56,513 nucleotides of DNA, taken from NCBI GenBank assembly GCA_004431415.1, contig QPMI01000331.1, positions 1 to 56,513 of the forward strand, in the 5' to 3' direction. The notes beneath the pieces were generated by a model. It was not told the origin of the DNA, made no database searches, and saw nothing but the letters and a program-made list of their open reading frames with translations. How positions within the stretch are numbered: position 1 is the first letter of the stretch; each line of letters starts with the position of its first letter. Both the position numbers and the translations under genes were made by a program. Positions 3,490 to 48,705 of this stretch are shown piece after piece. This DNA comes from Cyanophora paradoxa CCMP329. Its lineage: Eukaryota; Plantae; Glaucophyta.

Positions 3490-6400
3490 GCTAGCCTTAG
3501 GCAGATGACCCACCCACCAGCAAGTCACTCAGTCAAAGGCCCCAGGTTTCCAATCTGCCAGAAAAAAGAAGAAAGATGCACCCCAAATCTCTCTGGGGGA
3601 ATATGCCCAAGGAGCTAGCCTTAGGCAGATGACCCACCCACCCACAAGTCACTAATTCAAAAGCCCCAGGTTTCCAATCTGCCAGAAAAAAGAAGAAAGA
3701 TGCACCCCAAATCTCTCTGGGGGAATATGCACAAGTTGCTAGCCTTAGGCAGATGACCCACCCACCCACAAGTCACTAAATCAAAAGCCCCAGGTTTCCA
3801 ACCTGCCAGAAAAAAGAAGAAAGATGCACCCCAAATCTCTCTGGGGGAATATGCCCAAGGCGCTAGCCTTAGGCAGATGACCCACCCACCCGCAAGTCAC
3901 TCAGTCAAAGGCCCCAGGTTTCCAATCTGCCAGAAAAAAGAAGAAAGATGCACCCCAAATCTCTCTGTGGGAATATGCCCAAGGCGCTAGCCTTAGGAAG
4001 ATGACCCGCCCACCCACAAGTCAATAAATCAAAAGCCCCAGGTTTCCAATCTGCCAGAAAAAAGAAGAAAGATGCACCCCAAATCTCTCTGGGGGAATAT
4101 GCACAAGGTGCTAGCCTTAGGCAGATGACCCACCCACCAGCAAGTCACTCAGTCGAAGGACCCAGGTTCAGGATCTGTGACAAAATCAAAGAGAGATGCA
4201 CCCCAAATCTCTCTGGGGGAATATGCACAAGGCGCTAGCATTAGGCAGATGACCCACCCACCAGCAAGTCACTCAGTCCAAGGCCCCAGGTTTTCAATCT
4301 GCCAGAAAAAAGAAGAAAGATGCACCCCAAATCTCTCTGGGGGAATATGCACAAGTTGCTAGCCTTACGCAGATGACCCACCCACCCGCAAGTCACTCAG
4401 TCAAAGGCCCCAGGTTTTCAATCTGCCAGAAAAAAGAAGAAAGATGCACCCCAAATCTCTCTGGGGGAATATGCACAAGGCGCTAGCCTTAGGCAGATGA
4501 CCCACCCACCAGCAAGTCACTCAGATGATGGACCCAGGTTCAGGATCTGTGACAAAATCAAAGAAAGATGCACCCCAAATCTCTCTGGGGGAATATGCAC
4601 AAGTTGCTAGCCTTAGGCAGATGACCCACCCAAAGCAAGTCATTCAGTCAAAGGCCCCAGGTTTTCAATCTGCCAGAAAAAAGAAGAAAGATGCACTTCA
4701 AATCTCTCTGGGGGAATATGCACAAGTTGCTAGCCCTAGGCAGATGACCCACCCAAAAGCAAGTCACTCAGTCAAAGGCCCCAGGTTTTCAATCTGCCAA
4801 AAAAAAGAAGAAAGATGCACCCCAAATCTCTCTGGGGGAATATGCACAAGGCGCTAGCCTTAGGCAGATGACCCACCCACCAGCAAGTCACTCAGTCAAA
4901 GGCCCCAGGTTTCCAATCTGCCAGAAAAAAGAAGAAAGATGCACCCCAAATCTCTCTGGGGAATATGCCAAGGCGCTAGCCTTAGGCAGATGACCCACCC
5001 ACCCACAAGTCACTAAATCAAAAGCCCCAGGTTTCCAATCTGCCAGAAAAAAGAAGAAAGATGCACCCCAAATCTCTCTGGGGGAATATGCACAAGTTGC
5101 TAGCCTTAGGCAGATGACCCACCCAAAGCAAGTCACTCAGTCAAAGGCCCCAGGTTTCCAATCTGCCAGAAAAAAGAAGAAAGATGCACCCCAAATCTCT
5201 CTGGGGGAATATGCCCAAGGCGCTAGCCTTAGGCAGATGACCCACCCACCCGCAAGTCACTCAGTCAAAGGCCCCAGGTTTCCAATCTGCCAGAAAAAAG
5301 AAGAAAGATGCACCCCAAATCTCTCTGGGGGAATATGCACAAGGTGCTAGCCTTAGGCAAATGACCCACCCACCAGCAAGTCACTCAGACGATGGACCCA
5401 GGTTCAGGATCTGTGACAAAATCAAAGAGAGATGCATCCCAAATCTCTCTGGGGGAATATGCACAAGGCGCTAGCCTTAGGCAGATGACCCACCCAAAAG
5501 CAAGTCATTCAGTCCAAGGCCCCAGGTTTTCAATCTGCCAGAAAAAAGAAGAAAGATGCACTTCAAATCTCTCTGGGGGAATATGCACAAGTTGCTAGCC
5601 CTAGGCAGATGACCCACCCAAAAGCAAGTCACTCAGTCAAAGGCCCCAGGTTTTCAATCTGCCAAAAAAAAGAAGAAAGATGCACCCCAAATCTCTCTGG
5701 GGGAATATGCACAAGGCGCTAGCCTTAGGCAGATGACCCACTCACCAGCAAGTCACTCAGTCAAAGGCCCCAGGTTTCCAATCTGCCAGAAAAAAGAAGA
5801 AAGATGCACCCCAAATCTCTCTGGGGGAATATGCCCAAGGCGCTAGCCTTAGGCAGATGACCCACCCACCCACAAGTCACTAATTCAAAAGCCCCAGGTT
5901 TCCAATCTGCCAGAAAAAAGAAGAAAGATGCACCCCAAATCTCTCTGGGGGAATATGCGCAAGTTGCTAGCCTTAGGCAGATGACCCACCCACCAGCAAG
6001 TCACTCAGTCAAAGGCCCCAGGTTTCCAATCTGCCAGAAAAAAGAAGAAAGATGCACCCCAAATCTCTCTGGGGGAATATGCACAAGGTGCTAGCCTTAG
6101 GCAGATGACCCACCCACCAGCAAGTCACTCAGTCGAAGGACCCAGGTTCAGGATCTGTGACAAAATCAAAGAGAGATGCACCCCAAATCTCTCTGGGGGA
6201 ATATGCACAAGTTGCTAGCCTTAGGCAGATGACCCACCCAAAAGCAAGTCACTCAGTCAAAGGCCCCAGGTTTTCAATCTGCCAGAAAAAAGAAGAAAGA
6301 TGCACCCCAAATCTCTCTGGGGGAATATGCACAAGGCGCTAGCCTTAGGCAGATGACCCACCCACCAGCAAGTCACTCAGTCGAAGGCCCCAGGTTTCCG

Positions 6401-9400
6401 ATCTGCCAGAAAATAGAAGAAAGATGCACCCCAAATCTCTCTGGGGGAATATGCACAAGGCGCTAGCCTTAGGCAAATGACCCACCCACCAGCAAGTCAC
6501 TCAGTTGATGGACCCAGGTTCAGATCTGTGACAAAATCAAAGAAAGATGCACCCCAAATCTCTCTGGGGAATATGCACAAGTTGCTAGCCTTAGGCAGAT
6601 GACCCACCCAAAGCAAGTCATTCAGTCAAAGGCCCCAGGTTTTCAATCTGCCAGAAAAAAGAAGAAAGATGCACTTCAAATCTCTCTGGGGGAATATGCA
6701 CAAGTTGCTAGCCTTAGGCAGATGACCCACCCAAAAGCAAGTCACTCAGTCAAAGGCCCCAGGTTTCCAATCTGCCAGAAAAAAGAAGAAAGATGCACCC
6801 CAAATCTCTCTGGGGGAATATGCCCAAGGCGCAAGCCTTAGGCAGATGACCCACCCACCCACAAGTCACTAATTCAAAAGCCCCAGGTTTCCAATCTGCC
6901 AGAAAAAAGAAGAAAGATGCACCCCAAATCTCTCTGGGGGAATATGCACAAGGTGCTAGCCTTAGGCAGATGACCCACCCACCAGCAAGTCACTCAGTCA
7001 AAGGCCCCAGGTTTCCAATCTGCCAGAAAAAAGAAGAAAGATGCACCCCAAATCTCTCTGGGGGAATATGCCCAAGGCGCTAGCCTTAGGCAGATGACCC
7101 ACCCACCAGCAAGTCACTCAGTCAAAGGCCCCAGGTTTCCAATCTGCCAGAAAAAAGAAGAAAGATGCACCCCAAATCTCTCTGGGGGAATATGCACAAG
7201 GCGCTAGCCTTAGGCAGATGACCCACCCACCAGCAAGTCACTCAGTCGAAGGACCCAGGTTCAGGATCTGTGACAAAATCAAAGAGAGATGCATCCCAAA
7301 TCTCTCTGGGGGAATATGCACAAGTTGCTAGCCTTAGGCAGATGACCCACCCAAAAGCAAGTCATTCAGTCAAAGGCCCCAGGTTTCAATCTGCCAAAAA
7401 AAAGAAGAAAGATGCACCCCAAATCTCTCTGGGGGAATATGCACAAGGCGCTAGCCTTAGGCAGATGACCCACCCACCAGCAAGTCACTCAGTCAAAGGC
7501 CCCAGGTTTCCAATCTGCCAGAAAAAAGAAGAAAGATGCACCCCAAATCTCTCTGGGGGAATATGCCCAAGGCGCTAGCCTTAGGCAGATGACCCACCCA
7601 AAAGCAAGTCACTCAGTCAAAGGCCCCAGGTTTTCAATCTGCCAGAAAAAAGAAGAAAGATGCACCCCAAATCTCTCTGGGGGAATATGCACAAGGCGCT
7701 AGCCTTAGGCAGATGACCCACCCACCAGCAAGTCACTCAGTCGAAGGCCCCAGATTTCCGATCTGCCAGAAAATAGAAGAAAGATGCACCCCAAATCTCT
7801 CTGGGGGAATATGCACAAGGTGCTAGCCTTAGGCAAATGACCCACCCACCAGCAAGTCACTCAGATGATGGACCCAGGTTCAGGATCTGTGACAAAATCA
7901 AAGAAAGATGCACCCCAAATCTCTCTGGGGGAATATGCACAAGTTGCTAGCCTTAGGCAGATGACCCACCCAAAAGCAAGTCATTCAGTCAAAGGCCCCA
8001 GGTTTTCAATCTGCCAAAAAAAAGAAGAAAGATGCACCCCAAATCTCTCTGGGGGAATATGCACAAGTAACTAGCCTTAGGCAGATGACCCACCCACCAG
8101 CAAGTCACTCAGTCAAAGGCCCCAGGTTTCCAATCTGCCAGAAAAAAGAAGAAAGATGCACCCCAAATCTCTCTGGGGGAATATGCACAAGGCGCTAGCC
8201 TTAGGCAGATGACCCACCCACCCACAAGTCACTTATTCAAAAGCCCCAGGTTTCCAATCTGCCAGAAAAAAGAAGAAAGATGCACCCCAAATCTCTCTGG
8301 GGGAATATGCACAAGGCGCTAGCCTTAGGCAGATGACCCACCCAAAAGCAAGTCACTCAGTCAAAGGCCCCAGGTTTTCAATCTGCCAGAAAAAAGAAGA
8401 AAGATGCACCCCAAATCTCTCTGGGGGAATATGCACAAGGCGCTAGCCTTAGGCAGATGACCCACCCACCAGCAAGTCACTCAGTCAAAGGCCCCAGGTT
8501 TCCAATCTGCCAGAAAAAAGAAGAAAGATGCACCCCAAATCTCTCTGGGGAATATGCACAAGGCGCTAGCCTTAGGCAGATGACCCACCCACCCACAAGT
8601 CACTAAATCAAAAGCCCCAGGTTTCCAATCTGCCAGAAAAAAGAAGAAAGATGCACCCCAAATCTCTCTGGGGGAATATGCCCAAGGCGCTAGCCTTAGG
8701 CAGATGACCCACCCAAAAGCAAGTCACTCAGTCAAAGGCCCCAGGTTTTCAATCTGCCAGAAAAAAGAAGAAAGATGCACCCCAAATCTCTCTGGGGGAA
8801 TATGCACAAGGCGCTAGCCTTAGGCAGATGACCCACCCACCAGCAAGTCACTCAGTCGAAGGCCCCAGATTTCCGATCTGCCAGAAAATAGAAGAAAGAT
8901 GCACCCCAAATCTCTCTGGGGGAATATGCACAAGGTGCTAACCTTAGGCAAATGACCCACCCACCAGCAAGTCACTCAGATGATGGACCCAGGTTCAGGA
9001 TCTGTGACAAAATCAAAGAAAGATGCACCCCAAATCTCTCTGGGGGAATATGCACAAGTTGCTAGCCTTAGGCAGATGACCCACCCAAAAGCAAGTCATT
9101 CAGTCAAAGGCCCCAGGTTTCCAATCTGCCAGAAAAAAGAAGAAAGATGCACCCCAAATCTCTCTGGGGGAATATGCACAAGGTGCTAGCCTTAGGCAAA
9201 TGACCCACCCACCAGCAAGTCACTCAGACGATGGACCCAGGTTCAGGATCTGTGACAAAATCAAAGAGAGATGCATCCCAAATCTCTCTGGGGGAATATG
9301 CACAAGTTGCTAGCCTTAGGCAGATGACCCACCCAAAAGCAAGTCATTCAGTCAAAGGCCCCAGGTTTTCAATCTGCCAAAAAAAAGAAGAAAGATGCAC

Positions 9401-10395
9401 CCCAAATCTCTCTGGGGGAATATGCACAAGTAACTAGCCTTAGGCAGATGACCCACCCACCAGCAAGTCACTCAGTCAAAGGCCCCAGGTTTCCAATCTG
9501 CCAGAAAAAAGAAGAAAGATGCACCCCAAATCTCTCTGGGGGAATATGCCCAAGGCGCTAGCCTTAGGCAGATGACCCACCCACCCACAAGTCACTTATT
9601 CAAAAGCCCCAGGTTTCCAATCTGCCAGAAAAAAGAAGAAAGATGCACCCCAAATCTCTCTGGGGGAATATGCCCAAGGCGCTAGCCTTAGGCAGATGAC
9701 CCACCCAAAAGCAAGTCACTCAGTCAAAGGCCCCAGGTTTTCAATCTGCCAGAAAAAAGAAGAAAGATGCACCCCAAATCTCTCTGGGGGAATATGCACA
9801 AGGCGCTAGCCTTAGGCAGATGACCCACCCACCAGCAAGTCACTCAGTCGAAGGCCCCAGATTTCCGATCTGCCAGAAAATAGAAGAAAGATGCACCCCA
9901 AATCTCTCTGGGGGAATATGCACAAGGTGCTAGCCTTAGGCAAATGACCCACCCACCAGCAAGTCACTCAGATGATGGACCCAGGTTCAGGATCTGTGAC
10001 AAAATCAAAGAAAGATGCACCCCAAATCTCTCTGGGGGAATATGCACAAGTTGCTAGCCTTAGGCAGATGACCCACCCAAAAGCAAGTCATTCAGTCAAA
10101 GGCCCCAGGTTTTCAATCTGCCAGAAAAAAGAAGAAAGATGCACTTCAAATCTCTCTGGGGGAATATGCACAAGTTGCTAGCCTTAGGCAGATGACCCAC
10201 CCAAAAGCAAGTCACTCAGTCAAAGGCCCCAGGTTTTCAATCTGCCAGAAAAAAGAAAAAAGATGCACCCCAAATCTCTCTGGGGGAATATGCACAAGGC
10301 GCTAGCCTTAGGCAGATGACCCACCCACCAGCAAGTCACTCAGTCAAAGGCCCCAGGTTTCCAATCTGCCAGAAAAAAGAAGAAAGATGCACCCC
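3490..10395 (+). repeat. Satellite A array, ~124-bp monomer, ~56 copies
   Basis: CTAGCCTTAG recurs at 3491 and 3615 (period 124); several recurring monomer variants. Confidence 0.98.
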
Positions 10396-10518
10396 TGATA
10401 GGTCAGTGGTCGAGCCCGTAGGCTGATATCCCCCCTCGGGGGGGGGAACGGACCCAGTCTTGGTAGACTTGTTTTTTCTGTCTTGTGTCTTTTTGTTTTG
10501 TTTGCGGTGCTACCACCA
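10396..10518 (+). repeat. 5' LTR (123 bp)
   Basis: TGATAGG...CTACCACCA; no difference seen versus 15046-15168. Confidence 0.95.
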
Positions 10519-10522
10519 TTTG

Positions 10523-10538
10523 TGGTAGCATCGGTAGG
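10523..10538 (+). promoter_or_regulatory. Primer-binding site, tRNA-iMet-like (TGGTAGCATCGGTAGG)
   Basis: Begins TGG 4 nt after the LTR; TGGTAGC start matches the complement of eukaryotic initiator tRNA 3' ends (...GCUACCA). The host tRNA is not in the window. Confidence 0.75.
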
Positions 10539-10586
10539 CTTTCCAATCTGAAACTAAGAAGTGGAAAATCGCTTGCCAGTGCAGTA

Positions 10587-12107
10587 ATGGAGGAGGTGGC
10601 CTCTGAAAACGTGGACAATAGTTTAGAGGACGAGGAACCTCAGGTAGAAATCGAGGAAATGGCAGAAGAAACTCTTGCTAGACAGAAGCTTGTTAATCTT
10701 TTAGAGAAAAAAGCCTCCAAATTTCAATTTTCTGGTGTGTGTCTTAACCCAGACGGGTTTTCTGGAGTTGATGACTTGAAAATAAAAATGGAAAATGTCA
10801 TTTTCAAGGGGGTACCCGGTCTCTCACAAGATGAAAAGTTTTCTGTTCTGCTAGCGGCTACAACGGGTGTTGCTCATGATTTTCTTTGTCAGCTTGACCA
10901 CCCAGAACCCTTGCCAGCAACTTTTTTTGATGATGTTGTTAATCAATTGAAAGCGCGATTCAATCCCAGTAAAGACGATGCTCGGGCGTATTTCTACAAT
11001 CTCAATCCATGGAAACCAGACCTCAGTTCAAACATCAATGGATTTATTGATACGTCCCTCAAGGTAGCCAGAGTTGCATTCCCAGGAGAGGTGGACAAAA
11101 ATCTGGCGGAGTATATTCTGAAGCTGGCATCATCGAAGCACTACAAATATTTTAACATGCTTGGAATCTCCTCTTTGAATGATTTCCGCACCAAATTAGA
11201 GCAGGCAGAGGCCCAGAGGTGTTACGATCCCCCTGATCCCAAATTGATTCAGTCTCTTTTTCGATCACAAGTGATGTCTCAAAATTCAGCAGCCACTGGA
11301 CAGTCTGGAAACAATCTAAATTTTCGGGTGACCGATCAGTCTGACAGATCGCGTCGCTATTGCACCCACTGCCATAAAACTGGACACACTGAACCGTATT
11401 GTCATGACAAATATCCGGAACAGAAACAAAAGATGTTTGCTAATTTGCGGCGAATGAATCCTCGCCCCAATCGAGTGCAGGTACTTATTAGGGGTGTGAA
11501 ATATGAAGGTAATGAGCTTGACGATGGATCTTATGCAGTAGATGTTCCTCTTGCACCTGTGGAAAATGCAAACAAGTCTGAGTACCTCATAGCTAAGCCA
11601 AAAAGGGTTTACCCAAGAGAGGTGTTGCTGGGGTACAGACAACAGGAACAGTGTCCAGCAGGCACTGTACCTGTGGCCATCAATGGAATTAAGACCAGAG
11701 CCATGCTTGACACAGGTGCAGACGTCTCCCTAGCAACTAAGAAAGTTACTGTCAAGGCTGGCTCAAACATATCTTCTGCTGGCCCATTGCTTTCTGGTTT
11801 TTCTAATGACACTATAAAGCCACTTGGAACAACAGTTGTGGATGTTAGCTTAGGGCCTCTTTCCACAAAAGAAAAGTTAGTGGTTCTCGAAGACATGTCA
11901 CATGATGTTATTCTTGGAAGAGACTATTGCATTAAACAAGAAATTGCATCCAAAGAATCTGATGTATTTCACTTTGCACTTTCAGGAGCAGGATGTATTG
12001 CACTTTCAGGATGTATCCATCCATTAAACAAGAAATTGCACTTTCAGGAGCAGGATGTATTATTTTTGACAACAAGAAATTGCATCCAAAGAATCTGTTT
12101 GGCATAA
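10587..12107 (+). CDS. gag: Gag-protease (real coding likely ends ~11930 at the scar)
   Basis: Zinc knuckle CTHCHKTGHTEPYC (CX2CX4HX4C); aspartic protease MLDTGAD and ILGRD; first ATG at 10587 in ORF 10485..12107. Confidence 0.9.
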   Translation: MEEVASENVDNSLEDEEPQVEIEEMAEETLARQKLVNLLEKKASKFQFSGVCLNPDGFSGVDDLKIKMENVIFKGVPGLSQDEKFSVLLAATTGVAHDFLCQLDHPEPLPATFFDDVVNQLKARFNPSKDDARAYFYNLNPWKPDLSSNINGFIDTSLKVARVAFPGEVDKNLAEYILKLASSKHYKYFNMLGISSLNDFRTKLEQAEAQRCYDPPDPKLIQSLFRSQVMSQNSAATGQSGNNLNFRVTDQSDRSRRYCTHCHKTGHTEPYCHDKYPEQKQKMFANLRRMNPRPNRVQVLIRGVKYEGNELDDGSYAVDVPLAPVENANKSEYLIAKPKRVYPREVLLGYRQQEQCPAGTVPVAINGIKTRAMLDTGADVSLATKKVTVKAGSNISSAGPLLSGFSNDTIKPLGTTVVDVSLGPLSTKEKLVVLEDMSHDVILGRDYCIKQEIASKESDVFHFALSGAGCIALSGCIHPLNKKLHFQEQDVLFLTTRNCIQRICLA

Positions 12108-15076
12108 ATGGCCAGACGGTGCCTGAAGGAAAAGATGTGTTTGCAATTGTTTTCAATGGTAGTGATAATGAGATGATGCTAAAGAAGGGTGATGTTCTGG
12201 CATCCTGGATCCAAGAAGCAAATTATGAAATTCTGTCACTCAATCTCCATAAAGGCAAAGAAAATGTAACATCAACAATTGATCCTTCTTTTGACAGAGC
12301 TTACTTTGATAGCATAGAGTCTCAACTAGATTTTGGTTTTTCTGGAGCAACTGTAGAACAGAAACAAATAATGAAAGAATTGTTTAGGAACAACTGTGAT
12401 ATTTTTGAGAACAAGTTCGTATTTTCTGAAGACAAGTGCTTGCCTGGAGAACACAGCATTGATACTGGTGATCATCCTCCTATCAAATCGAGGCCTTTAC
12501 ACCATTCTCCCAAGGACCGAGAATTGTTCAAAACGACTTTGGAAGACATGCTTGCTCGAAATTTAGCAGCACAGTCCCAGAGCTCTTGGTCTTCTCCAGC
12601 TTTCTTTGTCAGCAAGCATGATACGTCTGAAATGCGGCTCGTAGTTGATTACAGAAACCTGAATGCAGCAACCAAGAAAAATGTTTATCCATTGCCTAAT
12701 ATACAAGATATGTTGGACGCACTTCAGGGAAGTCGGTTCTTTTCGAATATGGATCTGGCCACTGGATTTTGGCAAGTTACGATGAAGCCATCTGACCGGG
12801 AGAAAACCGCCTTTAAAACCCCTTATGGCTTGTTTGAAATGAAGGTTATGCCCATGGGACTTACAAATGCTCCCCCCACATTTCAGGCCATCATGGAAAA
12901 TATTTTCAATGATTATCTCTGGATGTTTGTTCTCGTTTTCATTGATGATCTTATTACATATTCCAAGACTTTTGAAGAGCACTGCAGAGACTTGCAAAAT
13001 ACATTCAACAGGCTACGTGCCAACAACGCGAAGCTCAAGCCCAACAAGTGTCACTTCTTTAAAATGGAGCTCAAGTTTCTTGGTCACATTGTAGATAGAA
13101 ATGGCAGGCGCCCTGACCCTGCAAAACTGGAAGCAATTGAAAAAGTTCCGATTCCAGATAATGCTACTGAGCTGCGGTCATTTCTTGGTTCCTGTAACTA
13201 TTACAGAGATAATGTCGACAAGTTTTCTATTATAACTGCTCGTCTCTACGATTTAACACAGAAAGATGTTCCTTTTGTTTGGACAGAGGAGCATACCAGG
13301 GACTTCATCAATCTGAAGAAAGAATTGCTGAAGTCCATAATTCTCCACTATCCTGATTTCAACAAACCGTTTATTATTGAAACAGATGCCTGCGAGAAGG
13401 GTGCTTCTGGCATTCTCTCTCAGGAACAAGAAGGTGTTTTGAAGCCCGTTTGCTTTTACAGTCGCAAATGGAGAGGCTCCGAGAAACAGATGCCTCCTTC
13501 TGAAGGTGAATGTGCAGCACTTGTAGATTGTCTTACTCAGTGGAGCCACTATCTTCTAGGGGCACCAAAGTCAACAGTGTTTACAGATTGTGAAGCTTTG
13601 GAATGGTTGCTCAGCAGAAAACCTGGAAAGGGAAAACTTGCTCGATGGGCTGCATTGATTCAGCAATATGATATCACCATTAAACACAGGAAGGGTTCTT
13701 TGAACCGTGCTGATGGTTTTTCAAGAGTTCCAGTAGATCCATCTTCACATATTTATGCAGAAGATAAATACGAAATTCTGAACATTGCAATTTCCCTTTC
13801 TGACGACCGAGTGAAAGAACTGTCTAATGCACAGCGACAAGACAAGGACCTCATTGAATTGATTGAGTTGTTGGAAGGGAAGACAACCTCCAACGAAAAG
13901 CTCCAGCGCATGGCCAAGTTTTTCACCATGAACAGAAAAGGACTGCTTATGTTTTCGCCTTTGAGTGTTAATGCTCGCATTGTTATTCCATCATCTTTGC
14001 AGCGTGATCTCATCAAGGACGCTCATGATCATCCCCTTGCAGGTCATCGTGGAGCTGACAAGATTCTACACAACTTGAAGAAAAAGTACTTTTGGTCAAC
14101 TATGAATGATGACGTCAAGACATTTGTTCAGCAATGTCAAAAATGTCAATTTCGGAAACCTTTGACTGGTCGATCTCCTGCGCCTTCACAAACTGTACCA
14201 GCATCCCGGCCCTTTGAAGTTATTGAACTAGATTTTATTGGACCTTTGCCAACGACTTCTCGCGGCAATCGCTATGTTTGTACTGCCGTCTGTGTGTATT
14301 CTGGATATCCGGAAGCGAAGGCGTTTGCTTCTATGTCAGCGAAATCAGCAGCAGGTATGCTTTATGAGGAAATTGTTTGTAGACACGGAGTTCCTCGCAT
14401 GATCTACACTGATCGAGGCGGAGCATTTGCAAGCAATGTTACGAAGCGTCTCTGCAGCAAACTTGGCATCAAATCAGTACTCAACACAGGTTATCGGCCT
14501 ATGGCGACCGGAAAAGTTGAACGTTTGAACCAGTCTCTAAAGGACATTATTTATAACTACATTAATGAAGATGGCGACAACTGGGACAAGTTCATCAGTC
14601 CCGCATTGTTTGCCGTTCGAAGTCACGCGAACAAGACGACTGGAATGTCTCCATTCTTCATAGTTCATGGACGAGATCCAGAGTTTCCCTATGATTTATT
14701 GCTTTCGGAAGCGGAGGCTTCTCCGAACTACTTGCATCGAATGATTGGTGATTTGAATACTGCTCGTGCTGCGGTTGACAAGGTCTTCAACAAACGCTTG
14801 GACAGGATTGCCGAAGAAAATGCTAAGAACGATTGGACAGAGTTCAAGATTGACGACATGGTTCTTGTCCGTGATCTGGGATCATCTGGACTTCAACCTC
14901 GATTCAAAGGACCCTACGCAGTCCTAAAGCGGACTTCGGCGGTGAACTACCTTCTGTGGGATCCCGACAACCCCAAGTTTCCCTTCGTTACTCATGTGGA
15001 TCGGATGCGACCCTACGTGGCATCTCTCTCAACTGGAGAGGGGGTTGATAGGTCAGTGGTCGAGCCCGTAGGCTGA
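11993..15076 (+). CDS. pol: Pol: reverse transcriptase, RNase H, integrase (no chromodomain); stop lies inside the 3' LTR
   Basis: RT RLVVDYRNLN, MPMGLTNAP, FIDD; RH IETDAC; IN H-H-C-C, LDFIGP/TDRG/VERLN, GPY motif. Confidence 0.96.
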   Translation: MYCTFRMYPSIKQEIALSGAGCIIFDNKKLHPKNLFGINGQTVPEGKDVFAIVFNGSDNEMMLKKGDVLASWIQEANYEILSLNLHKGKENVTSTIDPSFDRAYFDSIESQLDFGFSGATVEQKQIMKELFRNNCDIFENKFVFSEDKCLPGEHSIDTGDHPPIKSRPLHHSPKDRELFKTTLEDMLARNLAAQSQSSWSSPAFFVSKHDTSEMRLVVDYRNLNAATKKNVYPLPNIQDMLDALQGSRFFSNMDLATGFWQVTMKPSDREKTAFKTPYGLFEMKVMPMGLTNAPPTFQAIMENIFNDYLWMFVLVFIDDLITYSKTFEEHCRDLQNTFNRLRANNAKLKPNKCHFFKMELKFLGHIVDRNGRRPDPAKLEAIEKVPIPDNATELRSFLGSCNYYRDNVDKFSIITARLYDLTQKDVPFVWTEEHTRDFINLKKELLKSIILHYPDFNKPFIIETDACEKGASGILSQEQEGVLKPVCFYSRKWRGSEKQMPPSEGECAALVDCLTQWSHYLLGAPKSTVFTDCEALEWLLSRKPGKGKLARWAALIQQYDITIKHRKGSLNRADGFSRVPVDPSSHIYAEDKYEILNIAISLSDDRVKELSNAQRQDKDLIELIELLEGKTTSNEKLQRMAKFFTMNRKGLLMFSPLSVNARIVIPSSLQRDLIKDAHDHPLAGHRGADKILHNLKKKYFWSTMNDDVKTFVQQCQKCQFRKPLTGRSPAPSQTVPASRPFEVIELDFIGPLPTTSRGNRYVCTAVCVYSGYPEAKAFASMSAKSAAGMLYEEIVCRHGVPRMIYTDRGGAFASNVTKRLCSKLGIKSVLNTGYRPMATGKVERLNQSLKDIIYNYINEDGDNWDKFISPALFAVRSHANKTTGMSPFFIVHGRDPEFPYDLLLSEAEASPNYLHRMIGDLNTARAAVDKVFNKRLDRIAEENAKNDWTEFKIDDMVLVRDLGSSGLQPRFKGPYAVLKRTSAVNYLLWDPDNPKFPFVTHVDRMRPYVASLSTGEGVDRSVVEPVG
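15035..15044 (+). promoter_or_regulatory. Polypurine tract
   Basis: GGAGAGGGGG one base before the 3' LTR. Confidence 0.9.
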
Positions 15077-16620: not shown

Positions 16621-16624
16621 CCTA

Positions 16625-17012: not shown

Positions 17013-17015
17013 ATG

Positions 17016-37950: not shown

Positions 37951-38100
37951 TGTCCCTGTGACTCTGCAAAATTCTGCAATTTCTGGAAATGGATGTATCA
38001 TTTTCGAAGTCGATAACTTGCGATCACAAAACCTGTCAGGAATCAATGGCCAAAATGTTGCCGCAAATGGCCACGTTTTTGCAATTATTTTTAATTGTAG
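37951..38100 (+). mobile_element. Gypsy family-1-like post-protease fragment
   Basis: SAISGNGCIIFEVDNLRSQNLSGINGQ...VFAIIFN aligns with IALSGAGCIIFDNKKLHPKNLFGINGQ...VFAIVFN of the full element. Confidence 0.85.
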
Positions 38101-38980: not shown

Positions 38981-40026
38981 TTTCCTTTTGGGGTGCGCCT
39001 CATGATGCGGTGTCACCTAGAAAGTTGAGGCTGAGTGAGGTGCACCTGCCTAAGGCTAGCGCCTTGTGCAGTCTCCCCCCGAGAAACTTTTGTGTGCACC
39101 TGGCTTCGTTTTGGGGTGCGCCTCATGAACATACTCTCTATGTCGAGCCCTCCTATCCGGAGCAACTGCGCGACCAGCTGCATGCGCTCAATAATCGACT
39201 TGCGCAAGAGGTTTGGCGTTGTGGTAAAACTGCAGACTGGAAACACGAACCTGGAGGTCTCGCTATTGGCCCTTTCTCGAAACTTGCTGCTGAGCGCGTC
39301 TCGCTCCAGGGAGTAGCTCTCTGTCGCGTTCGCCTTCTTCCTGACACACAGCTCGCTTTCCATGAGATTGACGTGCCCTGCAATGTCTCGATTGACAGTC
39401 CCGTTGCCCTTCCCGATGTGCTTGCGATCCGGCCCGCGGCCCGTGCGATCGACTTCATTCCCGTGCCTGCGCATGCGCTTAGCCTTGTTAAGAACGCTTG
39501 CAAGTTGTCCTCCATGCCCGCACTCGTCCGGTTTCTGATGAACTCGTTGCAGCTTTCCGACCTTGCACTCCGTCCGCTGCCACCGTCGTCTTCCCGTACG
39601 TTTGCGTTCTACTCTGACCGCGAGAACATCAGCGATCGTTCAAAGGAAGAGCTGCGCCTCTCTAAGTCGGTTGCGTACAAGCTGCCTGCTGCCCCGTCGC
39701 GTTACACGGTTCACGACGTGTACAAGTACCTCTCCTCCCACGCTTTCATGGCGCCGACGACCGCTGAGACTAAGTGGCGTGCTGATCTCTCTCCAAAGTT
39801 CCTCTGGCCGCCGGGCTACGATGCGCGCACTGATCGCTTTCCCTGGTTCAACACGTCACCTAGAAAGTTGAGGCTGAGTGAGGTGCACCTGCCTACGGCT
39901 AGCGCCTTGTGCAGTCTCCCCCCGAGAAAAGTTTTTGTGCACCTGGCTTCCTTTTGGGGTGCGCCTCATGATGCAGTGTCACCTAGAAAGTTGAGGCTGA
40001 GTGAGGTGCACCTGCCTAAGGCTAGC
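38981..40026 (-). repeat. Satellite D (~123 bp) units at 38981-39128 and 39855-40026, split by a LINE fragment
   Basis: GGGGTGCG at 38990/39113; TAGAAAG at 39861/39984; carries the shared core. Confidence 0.85.
39129..39854 (+). mobile_element. Non-LTR (L1/Tx1-like) ORF2 C-terminal fragment
   Basis: Open frame with EPGGLAI (post-RT GGLG-like) and YTVHDVYKYL (FSVKSAY-like) motifs. Confidence 0.55.
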
Positions 40027-40840
40027 ATAAGTTGGGGCAAAAGCTGAAGCAGTCCCGCCAGCAGGAGGCGGCAGAGCATGGTTCACAAGATCATCAAGCT
40101 GGTGTGAAGTCATCGTTGTGTGAAGGTACGAGCGCTGCAGGGAATTAGGCTTTGGGGTGCGGTGATTCCAGTCTCCGATAAGAAGCATAGGCAAAGTGGC
40201 GGAGAGATACCCAGCCTGCACACAAGATTGCCACCACTCACGGCGATCCCTGCGCAATAGAGACCGAAATAAAACGTCCATCAGAGTCCTGACGAGCAAG
40301 TGTAACCTCGTGCTGTGCAGCGAAGAAGGGCGTGACCATTATGGCAACACCAGTGGAGCGGGATTGAGTCGGAGCAGAGTGGAAGAACAGGTCTCGCCAG
40401 GCAGCTGCAATCTTTTCAAGTTTTCCCAAAGGGTGACCAGCGTCATCAAATTCCCTCAGCTTCGTTTCCTGTAAGCAGAGGATGTCTATCTTGTGAGCAA
40501 CAGCAAACTTCCGGCAACGTTCCACAAATTTCTGCAGCTTGTTGGGACTGTTGAGCCCTCCCACATTTAATGATGCAATGTTAACCATATTTAATCAGGC
40601 CACGGGGGTGCACGCAGAGGCCGCGTCTGGTGTGGGGGGCGGGGTGCAGGAAGCATTCGGCCATCAATGAAAGTGCTTGACAAGGCAATGCAAAAGGCAA
40701 TGACGGGTGGGCTCAGCAAGTACTCGGTTGTAAGGCCAGAAAGACACTGGAGCAAGATAAGAAGGGAGCAAGGGACTACTGTGTCTGCTCAAAATTCTGC
40801 TTAGTGGGGGCTTCATAGTAGTTGCGTTGTTCAAGGCCAG
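40027..40840 (-). mobile_element. LINE APE endonuclease fragment with internal deletion, plus upstream sequence
   Basis: IASLNVGGLN, ILCLQET, STGVAI, DSDGR, LLIGDWN; ATG at 40588. Confidence 0.88.
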
Positions 40841-41020
40841 CCTGTGAGATTTCGGGGGGCGATCGGGGCAGCCCTGAACCCAACCTCGAACCTGGAAAAC
40901 TAACACCCCTCCCTATCATGCAAACCTGCCAGAGTGCTGGGGCGAATCCCAGGGCTCCGTTCCTGCTGTTTCGTGTGGGTGGGGACCCCTGTGAGATTTT
41001 GGGGGGCTATGGGGGCAGCC

Positions 41021-41319
41021 CTTGATTGTGTTCACTTCCAGGTTGCTCGTAAAAAGATTGCTCGCTGAAAGATCGTGGGCTATTTCAACCTTTGTCTTTC
41101 GATTTGATACACCAGCAATTAGGGTGCTATTATCCGAAATTCGAAGGGCTGCATTCTGGTGACCCGTTTCATCCTGGACAAAGAAATTCAATCGACCCCT
41201 ATCAAAGGACTTGGGTATGTTCCTTCGATTGTATTTAATTGTTTTGGGTATCTGGCGAGTTGCCTGGATGCTTGCAACCCTATTCCGCTCGTTATCATCG
41301 AGCAGAAAATCGATCCCCA
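41021..41319 (-). other. Intronless coding fragment of unknown, possibly viral, origin
   Basis: Open frame GIDFLLDDNERNRVASIQATRQ...GRLNFFVQDETG...NLEVNTIKG, both ends cut by SatC. Confidence 0.4.
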
Positions 41320-42298
41320 ATTTAGGGGGCGATTGGGGGCAGCCCCAAACCCAACCTCGAAACTAGAAAACTCACACCCCTCCCCATCATGCAAACCTGC
41401 CAGAGTGCTCTGGCGGATCCCAGCACTCCCTGCCTGCTGTTTCGTGTGGGTGGGGACCCCTGTGAGATGGGGACCCCTGTCAGATTTCGGGGGGCGATTG
41501 GTGCAGCCCCGAACCCAACCTCGAAACTAGAAAACTAACACCCCTCCCTATCATGCAAACCTGCCAGAGTGCTCTGGCGAATCCCAGCGCTCCCTCCCCA
41601 CCCACACGAAACAGCAGGCAGGGAGCGCTGGGATTCGCCAGAGCACCCTGGCAAATTTGCATGATAGGGAGGGGTGTTAGTTTTCTAGTTTCGGGGTTGG
41701 GTTCGGGGCTGCCCCCATCACCCCCTGAAATCTCACAGGAAATCTCACGGGGGTCCCCAGCCACACGAAAAAGCAGGCAGGGAGCGCTGGGATTCGCCAG
41801 AGCACTCTGGCAGGCTAACATGATAGGGAGGGGTGTTAGTTTTCTAGTTTTGAGGTTGGGTTCAGGGCTGCCTCGGGGCGATTGGGGCAGCCCCAAACCC
41901 AACCTCGAAACTAGAAAACTAACACCCCTCCCTATCATGCAAACCTGCCAGAGTGCTCTGGCGAATCCCAGCGCTCCCTGCCTGCTGTTTGGTGTGGGTG
42001 GGGACCCCTGTGAGATTTCGGGGGGCGATGGGGGCAGCCCCGCACCCAACCTTGAAACTAAAAAACTAACACCCCTTCCAATCATGCAAACCTGCCAGAG
42101 TGCTCTGGCGGATCCCAGCACTCCCCGCCTGCTGTTTCGTGTGGGTGGGGACCCCTGTGAGATTTCGGGGGGCGATTGGGGCAGCCCCAAACCCAACCTC
42201 GAAACTAGAAAACTCACACCCCTCCCCATCATGCAAACCTGCCAGAGTGCTCTGGCGAATCCCAGCGCTACCCGCCTGCTGTTTCGTGTGGGTGGGGA

Positions 42299-42595
42299 AC
42301 AATGGCACACTAGAGTTATCAGTGAGAGAAACAGAAACTGCTACATTTGGGTGTTTTGCAGAAGTTACTACACCTGTCGAGTGCGAGATATCAATTCCAT
42401 TTTTGATGCAATAATCGCGACCTAATATAACATCATGGGACATCTCATCAAGCACAACCAACTTCTCCTTTGTGCACAGAGGTCCTAAACTAACATCAAC
42501 AATTGCTGTCCCGAGGGGTTTGATCAATGTTTTTGAGAATCCAGCTAGTGCAGGACCATCAGAAGTTATGCTAGCATTAGCCGCATTTGGGTGGG
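42299..42595 (-). mobile_element. Gypsy family-1-like protease C-terminal fragment
   Basis: IKPLGTAIVDVSLGPLCTKEKLVVLDEMSHDVILGRDYCIK nearly matches the full element. Confidence 0.9.
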
Positions 42596-44151
42596 GACCC
42601 GTGGGTGGGGACCCCTGTGAGATTTCGAGGGGCCCCCCGAAATTTCACAGGGGTCCCCACCCACACAAAACAGCAGGCAGGGGGCGCTGGGATTCGCCAG
42701 AGCACTCTGGCAGGTTTGCATGATAGGGAGGGGTGTTAGTTTTCTAGTTTCGAGGTTGGGTTCGGGGCTGCCCCCATTGCCCCCCGAAATCCCACAGGGG
42801 TCCCTGTGAGATTTCAGGGGGCGATCGGGGCCACCCCGAACCCAACCTCGAACCTAGAAAACTAACACCCCTCCCTATCATGCAAACCTGCCAGAGTGCT
42901 CTGGCGGATCCCAGCGCTCCGTTCCTGCTGTTTCGTGTGGGTGGGGACCCCTGTGAAATTTCGGGGGGCGATCCAACAACTCAAGTAACGGCTTGTTGTA
43001 TGTGATCTTAATTTTTTCGGAATTGCTATCTTTCTCTCTGGCAATGATCTTGATGATATCCTCCTCGCTGTAAGCAAAGAAGCTGTTATCGTTGAACTGT
43101 GTTTTGATCCACCAAACAGCAGGCAGGGAGCGCTGGGATTCGCCAGAGCACTCTGGCAGATTTGCATGATAGGGAGGGGTGTTAGTTTTCTAGTTTCGAG
43201 GTTGGGTTCAGGGCTGCCCCCATCGCCCCCTGAGATCTTACAGGGGTCCCCACCCACACGAAACAGCAGGCAGGGAGTGCTGGGATTCGCCAGAGCACTC
43301 TGGCTGGTTTGCATGATAGGGGGGGTGTTGGTTTTCTAGTTTCAAGGTTGGGTTCGGGGCTGCCCCCATCACCCCCCAAAATCTCACAGGGGTCCCCACC
43401 CACACAAAACAGCAGGCAGGGAGCGCTGGGATTCGCCAGAGCACCCTGGCAAATTTGCATGATAGGGAGGGGTGTTAGTTTTCTAGTTTCGGGGTTGGGT
43501 TCGGGGCTGCCCCCATCACCCCCTGAAATCTCACAGGATGGGGGCAGCCCCGAACCCAACCCCGAAACTAGAAAACTAACACCCCTCCCTATCATGCAAA
43601 TTTGCCAGGGTGCTCTGGCGAATCCCAGCGCTCCCTGCCTGCTGTTTCGTGTGGGTGGGGACCCCTGTGAGATTTTGGGGGGCGATGGGGGCAGCCCCGA
43701 ACCCAACCTTGAAACTAGAAAACCAACACCCCTCCCTATCATGCAAACCTGCCAGAGTGCTCTGGCGAATCCCAGCACTCCCTGCCTGCTGTTTCGTGTG
43801 GGTGGGGACCCCTGTGAGATTTTGGGGGTGACTCAATGGGGGCAGCCCCGCACCCAACCTCGAAACTAGAAAACTAACACCCCTCCCTATCATGCAAAAC
43901 TGCCAGAGTGCTCTGGCGAATCCCAGCGCTCCCTGCCTGCTGTTTCGTGTGGGTGGGACCCCTGTGAGATTTGGGGGCGGCAATGGGGGCAGCCCCGAAC
44001 CCGACCTCGAAACTAGAAAACTAACACCCCTCCCTATCATGCAAAACTGCCAAAGTGCTCTGGCGAATCCCAGCACTCCCTGCCTGCCGGTTTATGTGGG
44101 TGGGGACCCCTGTGAGATTTTGGGGGGCAATGGGGGCAGCCCCAACCCAAC

Positions 44152-44372
44152 CATGGGCCTCATCTGCCCATCAAGCACGCTATTCAGACCGGTGACGCTC
44201 GTCCTATTGCTGAGCCCCCACGCAGGCATTCTCAGCAGGAGCGTGAACTGATTGTGCATGAGACTCGAAAATTGTTGGATCACAATTTAATTTGTCCCTC
44301 TCGGTCGCCTTGGGCTGCTCCTGTGGTCCTTGTGCGGAAGAAGGATGGAACTTTGAGATTTTGCATTGATTT
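44152..44372 (+). mobile_element. Gypsy family-2 RT N-terminal fragment
   Basis: SPWAAPVVLVRKKDGTLRFCID. Confidence 0.9.
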
Positions 44373-44590
44373 TGCGAATCCCAGCCCCCCCTGCCTGCTG
44401 TTTCGTGTGGGTGGGGACCCCTGTGAGATTTCGGGGGGCGATGGGGGCAGCCCCGAACCCAACCTCGAAACTAGAAATCTAACACCCCTCCCTATCATGC
44501 AAACCTGCCAGAGTGCTCTGGCGAATCCAAGCACTCCCTTCCTGCTGTTTCCTGTGGGTGGGGACCCCTGTGAGATTTCGGGGGGCGATT

Positions 44591-45350
44591 AAGATTTCAT
44601 CCGATCAAGGTGGTGAATTCGATAATTTTCTGCTAGCCGAGCTTGAGCGGCTCTTTAAAATAAAACATGTTCTTTCTTCGTCGTACCACCCGCAATCTCA
44701 GGGTGCGGTCGAAAAATTCAATGATGTTCTAGTCACTAGACTGCGTTTTTATATTGAGGACAATCCCAAGACTTGGGACAAACATTTGCCTTTCGCACTT
44801 CTCGCTGTGCGCAATTACAAGAACCCTACGGGTTATACACCTTTCGAAATGGTGTATGGACGGCCTTGTGTGTTGCCGACGGATTTGTTGGTGACTCCCC
44901 ACCTTGTTCTGGATCCTGCTGAGGCTGGTACATACCCGCAGCAGTTGGCTCGCAGATTTTCACGGATTTATTCTGATATCCAAGGAGTTAAAAATGACTA
45001 TTTGGCTACTCAAACGAATCTTAAGCAGTTGTACCTCCCTGGAGAATTTGTGAAGGTTCAAATCCCATCGACTTGTCGCTCTGACAAGTTGTCCCCTCGC
45101 TACACTGGACCTTGGATTATTTTGGAGGAAGTTTCTCATGGCAAAGGTGTTACTTTCCTTGTGGAGTATGTTGGACCTAAGGCTCGTGATGCGCCTAAAT
45201 TGAAATCTCGCATTATGGTTCATGCTTCTAGGATGGCGCCTTGGACTGAGTAGTTCCTTCTTTACTTATTGGCGAGCGAGGACGTCGCCTTTTCTTACTA
45301 CAGAGCGAGTTGAGCTGAAGCGTAGTTCGCCTAAGTCAGTGTGTCATAGT
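44591..45350 (+). mobile_element. pol: Gypsy integrase C-terminal fragment with PPT-like tract and LTR start
   Basis: SDQGGEF, YHPQSQGAVEKFN, TPFEMVYGR, YTGPW; stop 45253; AGAGCGAGT then TGAGCTGAAGCGTAG at ~45311. Confidence 0.88.
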
Positions 45351-45489
45351 ACCCCCTGATGTACCCTAGCCTAGTCTGATGTATGGGGGCTTGCCCTGGA
45401 GAGTTGGGGTGTTGGGTGGAAATACAGTGTGGTGTCCAGGAACTTGTCCTGGTACATCAGCGTGTGAACCCATAGTGTACTACGGGACA

Positions 45490-46172
45490 GGAGGCCTTGC
45501 ACTCTTCCTGTGGACTTGCTGGCTACTCCTGAAGTTCAAGTGACTACTTCAGAGCCTTCTAATTATCCAGCTACGCTGGCACGGCGTTTCTCTCGGATTT
45601 ACACTGATATTCAGCAAGCTAAGGAAGAATATCTTGCCAAGCAGCAGCAGCGGCCTTCTCAACCAGTTTTTATTCCTGGAGAAGTTGTTGCTGTGAAGAC
45701 CCCTTCCACTCGGCGGTCTGATAAGCTTTCCCATCGTTTCACTGGACCTTGGACTGTGCTTAAAGATGTTTCTCACGGCAAGGGAGTTACTTTCTTGCTG
45801 GAGTATTCTGGTCCTAAGGAGCGTGGTTCCCCTGCTGAGGGCTCGCGTCAAATGGTTCATGCCTCTCGGCTCAAGCCTTGGGAGGGACCCTGCTTGATCT
45901 CTTTCTTTTCTTTTCCTTCCTTGGGCTTGGCCAGCGCGGACGTGGCCTTTTTCTTACTTGGAGGAGAGTTGTTGCGAAGCGTAGTTCCCCTTCCCTTTTG
46001 CCGTAGCGAATGTAGCATGTACGCTAGTGATACCCCGTCCCTCGTGTAGGGGTATGTTATTCAATCATACGCGGATATTACGCGTGTGTGCACGTGCGTC
46101 CCGGCACGGCACTGCGCCGTGTGTGGAAGTGGCTTAGAACCTATCGTATAGACTTTAGCAGCTTCTTTTCAC
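45490..46172 (+). mobile_element. pol: Second Gypsy integrase 3' fragment, PPT (45960-45968) and truncated LTR (from 45970)
   Basis: DKLSHRFTGPW...VHASRLKPW, homologous to the preceding fragment; GGAGGAGAG-T-TGTTGCGAAG. Confidence 0.85.
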
Positions 46173-46800
46173 AAATCCATCAAAGTTCAGTTGAGCTAAT
46201 TTCTCATGGACTCTGCGGACATGGCTTTTTGCACCCTCATCAGGGAACGCTTTTGGAACAACATCACAGGCCAATGAAAGAAATCTCCGCAGATCAAGTT
46301 CATCTGATTCGGGGAGCTAAGGAAACATTGCGTTCCATTTACGTTGGAAATCGGTTTCCGATAAACCAAAATGATTTTCAAACTCTGTACAAATGGTTTC
46401 AATGAAGTTTGCAGGTGCAGGATTGGGGACGGCCATTTTTGCGACCAACTTTTTAGCTTCTTTGCGACAGGTGTGCAGAATAATACTGTACTTATCGGCT
46501 ACGGAATAATTCTGGCGTCCGAAATAATTTTGTAACGACATTTTATACGTTTCGAGATCACATATGCCATCAGCTTCCCCAGAGTATTGCAGGTTAGGAT
46601 CCTAGAGAAGGCCAACAATTGTTCGTTTGTAAGAGCATCACCCATTTCCGACAAATTGTATTCAGGAGAGTCTATTTCAACTACCGGTTCGCTACCTTTG
46701 TCGTCTGATTCAAGCTCTAGTCGCTGCAACCTATTCGCTATTCGCTCCCAACCAGCGAATCGTTTAGGACCCACTGTTAAATGAGGGAGGTTTGAACTAT
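46173..46800 (-). pseudogene. gag: Decayed gag fragment distantly related to family-1 Gag
   Basis: DKYSIIL...PNPAPANFIETI...FGLSETD...MFP*LPE...AFPDE aligns by eye to EKFSVLL...PEPLPATFFDDV...FNPSKDD...LNPWKPD...AFPGE (W replaced by stop). Confidence 0.65.
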
Positions 46801-46911
46801 GATTGCTACCAATCGACGGCTAACGTAAGCTCTATGATGAGAAACTGATGAATATGAGAAAAACAATACAAGAACCCAATCTAACTGCCGCCCCTCCTGT
46901 GGAGAACCTAA

Positions 46912-48705
46912 CAGGATTCGCCAGAGCCCTCTGGCAGGTTTGCATGAGAGGGCGGAGTGTTAGCTTTCTAGTTTCGAGGTTGGGGTCGGGGCCGCCCTGA
47001 TCACCCCCCGAAATCTCACAGGGGTCCCCACCCACACGAAACAGCCGGCAGGGAGCGCTGGGATTCGCCAGAGCACTCTGGCAGGTTTGCATGATAGGGA
47101 GGGGTGTTAGTTTTCTAGTTCCCATGCTAGTGAGGGGTGTTCATTCTCTTGTTTTGAGGTTGGGTTTGGGGCTTCCCCGATCGCCCCCCGAGATCTCACA
47201 GGGGTCCCCACCCACACGAAACAGCAGGCAGGGAGCGCAAGGATTCGCCAGAGCAGTCTGGTAAATATGCATGATAGGGGGGGTGTTAGTTTTCAAGTTT
47301 CAAGGTTGGGTTTGGAGCTGCCCTGATCGCCCCTGAAATCTCACAGGGACCCCTGTGAGATTTTGGGGGGTGATGGGGAAAGCCCCGAACCCAACCTCGA
47401 AACTAAAAAACTAACACCCCTCCCTATCATGCAAACCTGCAAGAGTAGCCCTGCTGGAGAATTTCTCTAGGAGAGTGGGAGTTGTCAGAGGGACTTTTTG
47501 TATGTGAAGTGCTTCTGCTATTTCCAACAATTTCAAGAGATTGTTTGCTCTTCGAAATTCCACCAAGTGATCCATAATGCTTTCTGGGAAACACAGAAGG
47601 AGACAAAGAAACCTTGCTAGGTTTGCATGATAGGGCGGGTTGTTAGCTTTCTAGTTTCGAGGTTGGGTTCGGGGCTGCCCCCATCGCCCCCTGAAATCTC
47701 ACAGGGGTTCCCACCCATACGATACAGCAGGCAGGGAGCGCTGGGATTCGCCAGAGAACTCTGGCAGGTTTGCATGATAGGGAGGGGTGTTAGTTTTCTA
47801 GTGTCGAGGTGGGGTCCCCACCCACATGAAACAGCAGGAAGGGAGGGCTGGGATTCGCCAGAGCACTCTGGCAGTTTTGCATGATAGGGAGGGGTGTTAG
47901 TTTTCTAGTTTCGAGGTTGGGTTCAGGGCTGCCCCGATTGCCCCCCGAAATCTCACAGAGGCGCACCCCAAAAGGAAGCCAGGTGCACACAAAAATTTCT
48001 GGGGGGAGAATGCACAAGGCGCTAGCCTTCAGCAGGTGCACCCCACCCAGCCTCAACTTTCTAGGTGACACTGCATCATGAGGCGCACCCCAAAAGGAAC
48101 TGCAGGCTCTCACATTTTGGATTGCATGGGGAATTTTGTAAGTGAAGTTTGTTGGGGTCCCATCATCTCGGTCCCTGGAATCAATATTTAGGTAATGACG
48201 CGTCATTCTGTTTAATAAAGCATTTTAAAAATTTCTTTTGGTATTTTAAACATAAGAGATGGCACTCGCCCCCCAAAATCTAACAGGGTCCCCACCCACA
48301 CGAAACAGCAGGAAGGGAGCGCTGGGATTCGCCAGAGCACTCTGGCAGGTTTGCATGATAGGGGGGTGTTAGTTTTCTAGTTTATGAGGTTAGGTTCGGG
48401 GCTGCCCCGATGGCCCCCGAACCCAACCTCGAAACTAGAAAACTCACACCCCTTCCAATCATGCAAACCTACCAGAGTGCTCTGGCGAATCCCAGTGCTC
48501 CCCGCCTGCTGTTTCATGTGGGTGGGGATTTCTGTGAGATTTGGGGGGGCGATGGGGGCAGCCCAGGCGCTAGCCTTAGGCAGGCACACCCCACCCAGCC
48601 TCAACTACCTTTTGCCTCACTGTATCATGAGGAGCACCCCAAAAGGAAGCCAGGTGCACACAAAACTTTCTTGGGGGAGACTGCACAAGGCACTAGCCTT
48701 AGGCA
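46912..48705. repeat. Mixed SatC (both strands) and SatD (47958-48098, 48565-48705) with inserts
   Basis: Monomers visible; inserts at ~47445-47615 and 48100-48265. Confidence 0.88.
48100..48206 (-). pseudogene. N-terminus of a viral minor capsid/penton-like protein
   Basis: MTRHYLNIDSRDRDDGTPTNFTYKIPHAIQNV fits the recalled IDSRxR...F.y.lp..i.nV N-terminal motif of NCLDV/Polinton-like penton proteins; AT-rich upstream spacer. Confidence 0.55.

Follow-up and report, generated by a model that had tools for sequence, protein, structure and literature searches.

A 25-bp Dyad Box Shared by Three Satellite Families of the Glaucophyte Cyanophora paradoxa

Introduction

Related satellite families differ from one another by insertions and deletions and by segments that evolve unevenly, and such superfamilies, or satellite 'libraries', come with higher-order repeats, intermingled arrays and invasion by retrotransposons. 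The families SatA, SatB and SatD, which occur together in a 56,513-nucleotide stretch of the glaucophyte Cyanophora paradoxa CCMP329 (contig QPMI01000331.1 of assembly GCA_004431415.1, the whole of which is referred to here as the window), belong in this category, and nothing essential sets them apart from it. They share a segment of homology that contains a box of 25 bp, identical in the consensus of all three families and with dyad symmetry. This box, its possible significance, and the history of the families that carry it are the subject of the present analysis.

Short conserved boxes are known from several satellite systems. The CENP-B box of primate alpha satellite and mouse minor satellite is a 17-bp asymmetric site for a pogo-derived protein, and it belongs to a single satellite family. 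It is present in only a fraction of the centromeric satellite units, and thus the decay of a box in individual units does not preclude function. The CpG sites in it are methylation-sensitive. The Cyanophora box differs in being 25 bp long, in its predicted hairpin, and in its occurrence in three families.

A second group comprises centromeric satellites with dyad symmetry (non-B DNA), in which, as Kasinathan and Henikoff reportedly argued in 2018, short dyads are predicted to form cruciforms or hairpins. The Cyanophora units likewise contain a short predicted hairpin dyad.

The closest precedent is the conserved satellite box of the nematode genus Meloidogyne, where the likeness is one of features. 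In Meloidogyne, satellites that are 32-64% identical have a 17-bp Box 1 in common, sited at the transitions between units (PMC3694981), and CenH3-associated tandem repeats in this genus share a GC-rich, dyad-forming box of 19 bp that is conserved across species (PMC8097292). The box-bearing repeats are enriched in CenH3 chromatin immunoprecipitation (PMC3694981; PMC8097292). Cyanophora resembles this system in having several tandem families whose overall identity is low, one short conserved block that is GC-rich and has dyad symmetry, and intermixed arrays. In contrast to Meloidogyne, where the transitions fall exactly at the box, only one of about eight family switches in the window lies inside it, and the homology around the box is much longer (~92 bp).

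Literature searches returned no paper on satellites or centromeres of Cyanophora, and nothing on centromere DNA in the glaucophyte lineage. The architecture described below is of a known kind, and it is a new example of it, the interest of which is moderate and comes mainly from the lineage.

Three Families with One Invariant Box

Families were called with Tandem Repeats Finder (TRF) and by mapping consensus units onto the window. An earlier note on this DNA, made from the sequence alone, had described a conserved core of about 60 bp shared by three otherwise unrelated satellites. The three core strings that it quoted occur exactly in the window, the 62-mer of SatA 16 times, the 64-mer of SatB four times and the 64-mer of SatD once, on the minus strand. 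The shared core is therefore real, and SatA and SatB are true arrays that carry it, but SatD is present only as four pieces and forms no array here.

The conservation of the core is not even. In a three-way alignment of the consensus units, 61 of the 92 columns are invariant and the longest invariant run spans 25 columns (permutation p=1.7e-4). Pairwise identity is 100% in this 25-mer, TGCACAAGGCGCTAGCCTTAGGCAG, and falls to 55-77% in the remainder of the 62-64-bp core and to 59-67% in the 27 outer columns. Because the rest of the core is no better conserved than the columns that adjoin it, the natural unit is the 25-bp invariant block and not the 60-bp core. Conservation across the families is significantly uneven, and the consensus sequences suggest that change has been slowed in this block in all three lineages. 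At up to three mismatches the 25-mer has 120 matches in the window (none is expected in shuffled sequence), every one of which falls in a SatA, SatB or SatD unit, and 35 of the copies are exact. The dyad AAGGC-GCTA-GCCTT and the spaced TGCAC motifs noted earlier are both present.

23634-23658, plus strand: exact 25-bp invariant box TGCACAAGGCGCTAGCCTTAGGCAG, an example from SatB (one from SatA lies at 8184-8208)

SatA has a unit of 124 bp and comprises ~98 units across five arrays. SatB has a unit of 206 bp and comprises ~10 units, plus fragments. SatD, with a unit of 123 bp, is represented by pieces of 141-172 bp (1.1-1.4 units each), two of which, 38982-39128(-) and 39855-40026(-), are mutually in phase and make up one array of 2.6 units that is interrupted by a 726-bp insert. 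The stretches that carry the three families are as follows.

3489-10395, plus strand: SatA array of 55 units, each with the box (TRF period 124, 55.8 copies, 90% matches; unit mapping)
15167-16620, plus strand: SatA array, the continuation of the 3489-10395 array beyond a gypsy insertion
17016-17435, plus strand: SatA remnant with a 59-bp 'core-only' unit; a SatC fragment adjoins it where the core ends on the 3' side
26092-26832, plus strand: SatA array adjoining a SatB array (TRF)
34234-37651, plus strand: SatA array with a higher-order period of 3 to 6 units and a perfect box in only ~1 unit per 4-6
3236-3345, minus strand: isolated inverted SatA fragment carrying the box
23342-25080, plus strand: SatB array of 206-bp units (8.5 copies, 95% matches; TRF, unit mapping)
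25750-26091, plus strand: SatB array resuming beyond an insert of 669 bp; it gives way to SatA through a degenerate junction
22427-22601, minus strand: inverted SatB fragment, 93% to consensus
32030-32217, minus strand: decayed SatB-like stretch, with the alignment reaching ~32270; one box is 24/25 intact and its neighbour decayed
29022-29161, minus strand: SatB/SatA hybrid unit, with a SatB-type 5' part, then the box, then a SatA-type 3' part
37652-37804, plus strand: lone SatB-type unit between SatA and SatC, with SatA-type letters (AATATG, GGTG) in the box region
38982-39128, minus strand: SatD piece, 1.2 units, exact box at 39046-39070
39855-40026, minus strand: SatD piece, 1.4 units, beginning within the box at GCTAGCC
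47962-48099, plus strand: SatD piece, 1.15 units, with a microhomology join to SatC
48565-48705, plus strand: SatD piece, 1.15 units, with a SatC join within the box (AGGCGCTAGCC)

Extent and Origin of the Homology

According to the earlier note, the rest of the monomers do not align. This does not hold. Colinear similarity of the three families covers ~92 columns, from GCC(C)ACAAAA, ~25 bp 5' of the core, to CCAGCA, ~12 bp 3' of it. Moreover, the whole SatA flank is colinear with the SatB flank, with matches in 45 of 60 aligned columns (z=3.6, p=0.0007 against shuffles). Relative to SatA, SatB has ~70-80 bp extra, located in two insertions specific to it. Since the two flanks align significantly, SatB looks like a SatA-type unit to which these ~70-80 bp have been added. 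Flanks that align across families, which the earlier note had named as an outcome contrary to its own proposal, are thus what was found for SatA and SatB, and all three families align over ~37 bp on the two sides of the core.

These observations bear on the proposal that selection maintains the ~60-bp core as a box for protein binding or recombination, analogous to the CENP-B box, and that this core founds new families when it is amplified together with an unrelated flank. Neither transposons nor other sequence in the window match the family-specific flanks, and hence there is no sign of captured foreign DNA. Given that ~92-100 bp are common by descent and that SatA and SatB are colinear, amplification of a core plus an unrelated flank is not needed, and the seeding of new families in this way is unsupported. 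The proposal draws support from the significance of the invariant 25-mer, from its dyad symmetry and from the Meloidogyne precedent of boxes at unit junctions. Against it stand homology that continues well past the core, the colinear flanks of SatA and SatB, and flanks without a match in the window. With the evidence from junctions and from variation among units, which is given below, it appears quite unlikely.

The explanation that is probably the best overall is a single satellite superfamily, related by descent, with a slowly evolving dyad box. SatA, SatB and SatD would be diverged descendants of one unit of ~120 bp, from which the shared segment was inherited, and SatB would be a SatA-type unit enlarged by ~70-80 bp. 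Common descent of the three families is itself very likely. Within homology of an ordinary level (55-77%), the consensus of the 25-bp block has stayed the same in all three lineages. The most likely reason is a weak constraint that would act on arrays rather than on every unit, such that enough intact dyad boxes are retained. In line with proposals made for the boxes of other satellites, the retained boxes might be needed by a chromatin protein or for a non-B DNA structure. As the cause of the invariance, however, constraint is put forward tentatively, at somewhat less than an even chance.

Two other kinships were rejected. SatC, a family with a unit of 147 bp that occupies the window from 37805 onwards and changes orientation many times, is unrelated to the core: the best of six comparisons gave p=0.016, uncorrected. 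An origin of the units from a TGCAC-headed sub-repeat of ~25 bp was likewise dismissed, because circular autocorrelation of the four consensus units gave no lag clearly above shuffles; SatB alone reaches the 95% limit of the null distribution, at lag 20.

Variation within Families

If the box is constrained, units within a family might be expected to vary less there than elsewhere. Whole arrays were mapped onto concatenated consensus units, and the borders of units therefore do not bias the variability profile. In the 98 units of SatA, pi is 0.066 in the core delimited by the earlier note and 0.134 in the other half of the unit (the flank). The core value is the second lowest of 124 circular windows, and a site-level Mann-Whitney test gives p=0.007. 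In SatB, the box of the 10 units has a mismatch rate of 1.6%, compared with 5.5% elsewhere in the unit. The least variable 25-bp window, in SatA as well as in SatB, overlaps the 3' half of the box and extends into the adjoining family-specific sequence.

Several points weigh against descent with a slowly evolving box. The low pi of the SatA core is due to a few variants of intermediate frequency that are linked to higher-order repeats and are not independent events. Rare variants, which track recent mutation best, are as common in the core (1.31 per site) as in the flank (1.35). Mismatch in the SatA 25-mer is 5.9%, against 6.1% in the rest of the unit, which means that the box has no protection there. 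Exact boxes are found in only 27 of ~103 SatA units, and 54 of 103 keep an undamaged AAGGC/GCCTT dyad. Losses of the dyad are mostly of the CpG type (GGCG to GGTG or GTTG), with the CpG decayed in 38 of 103 units and a single compensatory change. The decayed SatB stretch at ~32000-32270(-), in which the core had been described as nearly intact, does retain one core at 62/64 positions, but the neighbouring box is badly decayed, with 18 of 22 aligned positions matching and gaps in between. As to the homology, the inner flanks (~22-25 bp) of SatD are not significantly like those of SatA, both being short and much diverged, or those of SatB, and full-length homology of SatD is suggested only by unit length and colinear anchors. 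The nearly equal units of SatA and SatD (124 and 123 bp), together with anchors on both sides, would fit full-length descent. Finally, all of the evidence comes from a single 56-kb window.

The evidence from individual units for selection on the box is thus weak and mixed. The idea of a selected box retains the invariant run (p=1.7e-4) and the hairpin dyad, but has to accommodate a SatA box that is as variable as the rest of its unit. This lack of protection also counts against the broader proposal of a family-founding core.

The same result counts in favour of an explanation that requires no function. Conversion or unequal crossover between intermixed arrays, acting through the longest shared identity, could keep the block uniform among families without any protein that reads it. 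A crossover within the box is indeed present in the SatB/SatA hybrid unit at 29022-29161(-), and the SatB-type unit at 37652-37804 has SatA-type letters around its box (AATATG, GGTG). In addition, the consensus units of SatA and SatB differ at only one of the 35 positions that run from GGGGGAA through GGCAG, and the two AG(G/A)TG repeats that bound the core are altered in parallel in SatA, suggesting conversion between them. However, there is a single clear hybrid in ~115 units. Tracts of conversion should also have evened out a stretch longer than 25 bp, leaving the invariant run with less sharp edges, and the SatD box is exact despite the presence of just four short SatD pieces in the window. 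Apparent hybrid contigs at the loose ends at 34919 were rejected, since they are SatB contigs that cross-map through the 35 shared bases. Exchange of this kind is considered unlikely to be the cause, and we tentatively infer that constraint, rather than exchange between families, keeps the block identical.

The window offers a clean example of uneven evolution in a satellite superfamily, in which conservation at the level of the consensus can coexist with the absence of protection in individual units.

Family Switches and Array Ends

Family switches were aligned to both of the consensus units concerned, and array ends were mapped to unit coordinates. Only one of about eight switches, the hybrid unit at 29022-29161(-), is a homologous crossover within the box. 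The remaining switches join positions that are not equivalent (core coordinates 27, ~62, 77 and 120, and positions in the flanks) through microhomologies of 2-9 bp, which argues against a family-founding core.

37651: SatA-to-SatB switch, from SatA core position 27 to SatB flank position 126 via the microhomology GGGGA
37804: SatB-to-SatC switch, 13 bp past the core
17435: SatA-to-SatC switch, at the 3' edge of the core
48564: SatC-to-SatD switch, within the box
47961: SatC-to-SatD switch, in the SatD flank
38981: SatD-to-SatC switch, in the SatD flank

Taken together, ~10 of 29 breakpoints (array ends and switches) fall in the 62-64-bp core, whereas ~12.7 would be expected from its share of the units. 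There is thus no enrichment, and the notion of a recombination box, with one crossover inside it, finds no support. Two features are more favourable to it. Several SatC joins touch the core, and five breakpoints, array ends among them, lie at core positions 38-46, a nine-base span about the GCTAGC centre, compared with ~1.9 expected; this excess is marginal and was noticed post hoc.

A deletion between the AGATG(C)ACCC direct repeats on either side of the core produced the 59-bp 'core-only' SatA unit at ~17234-17312, which shows that these flanking repeats, AGATGCACCC and AGATGACCC, can recombine. Several ends of SatA arrays coincide in unit coordinates, two at position 95 (16620 and 29022) and three at positions 66-68 (3236, 17016 and 26832). 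These coinciding ends may be the matching ends of inversions or of insertions that split one original array.

The isolated pieces also bear on the possibility that the units are, or stem from, short non-autonomous mobile elements, for example of the Helitron2/Helentron type or borne by miniature inverted-repeat transposable elements. On that view a transposase would recognise the block as an element end, and the interiors of the units would have no relation to one another. The hairpin and the CTAG in the block are in keeping with such an end. The isolated pieces, however, lack constant termini, with start/end core coordinates of 81/66, 137/105, 83/72, 97/120, 42/90, 101/120 and 38/55. Terminal inverted repeats and regular target duplications were not seen in the pieces and inserts examined, the box lies in the middle of the homology instead of at its edge, and no match was found in viral and metagenome collections or in Rfam. 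A mobile-element origin is accordingly very improbable.

Predicted Structure and Possible Role of the Box

In all three families the box is predicted to fold, as single-stranded DNA, into the hairpin TGC-AC-AAGGC-GCTA-GCCTT-AG-GCA. For SatD, the whole core is predicted to form a three-way junction closed by AGGTGCAC and GTGCACCT (z=-5.0), and none of 200 shuffles folds as well. Folding of the SatA core (z=-1.5) and of the SatB core (z=-1.75) is not significant against shuffles.

An array of structured-RNA genes, such as snoRNA or tRNA-derived genes, was rejected, the Rfam scan of the whole window at gathering thresholds giving no matches. A permissive Rfam scan of 37400-40100 gave one miRNA match at chance level, outside the core. 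An exact 23-mer of the box was absent from the metagenome and viral contig collections searched.

Binding of a protein to the box is possible. If the box is constrained, it would provide a compact 25-bp probe for centromeric or heterochromatic arrays in a glaucophyte, as well as a bait for the protein that reads it. It is a long shot that the dyad box is a sequence or structure element recognised by a centromere or heterochromatin protein in glaucophyte algae and retained across satellite turnover in the manner of the 19-bp Meloidogyne box; were this candidate role true, it would offer the first DNA handle on centromere identity in an early-branching photosynthetic lineage.

Satellites in Public Reads

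The read evidence consists of assembled contigs of public runs, all from one organism. Independent DNA data sets of this organism contain SatA, SatB-type, SatC and SatD sequences, all in great abundance. The runs guessed to be RNA have comparatively few of their contigs. The summed depth of contigs in DNA runs suggests that SatD-type sequence is abundant elsewhere, although depth is not copy number and cross-mapping through the shared block is possible. The sequence of the SatA-to-SatC junction at 17435 recurs in one run guessed to be RNA, as a joint of 37060 to 38538 with GCACCGCATTT.

Retroelements, Inserts and Other Features of the Window

The 56.5-kb window as a whole is a satellite block invaded by Ty3/gypsy retrotransposons, with Pol-type open reading frames (ORFs) at 10485-15076, 20085-21821, 27951-28826 and 32366-33898. 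One of these elements lies within a SatA array.

10396-15168, plus strand: young Ty3/gypsy element splitting a SatA array, with 123-bp long terminal repeats (LTRs) of 100% identity and a target duplication of CCCC

This element is inserted within the core delimited by the earlier note, at AGATGCACCCC^AAATC, which is an ordinary insertion. It is apparently intact and very young, with unusually short LTRs, and encodes a gag-protease ORF and a Pol ORF of 1027 amino acids (reverse transcriptase, RNase H and integrase), in which Pfam reported no chromodomain. No exact match to this Pol protein was on record.

Two further inserts, of 395 bp in SatA (16621-17015) and of 669 bp in SatB (25081-25749), are flanked by satellite-unit repeats of 30 bp and 17 bp, respectively. 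No terminal inverted repeats were found in either. The repeats might be read as long target duplications, but they are indistinguishable from deletions of 94 bp and 189 bp in a tandem array and are not counted as such.

The 726-bp insert in the SatD mini-array (39129-39854) is not satellite DNA. In DNA runs its contigs have a depth of ~2000, compared with ~150 for single contigs nearby, and in the runs guessed to be RNA its representation is relatively good. An ORF of 423 amino acids that overlaps it (38776-40047, plus strand) has no Pfam match.

The SatC region (37805-56511) contains more than 15 orientation switches and near-perfect inverted repeats among its arms; for example, 43319-43517 and 43537-43735 are 98% complementary with a spacer of 19 nt. 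The region looks like a foldback or palindrome-rich satellite zone.

At the opposite end of the window, a non-satellite stretch of 61-65% GC (1-3233) includes, at 1006-1155, a microsatellite of the GGGGCCCGGG type with a period of 10 bp (and 40 bp). Finally, a perfect tandem duplication of 62 bp at 27859-27985 (2.0 copies, 100% identical) lies just upstream of the gypsy reverse-transcriptase ORF at 27951-28826 and overlaps its start.

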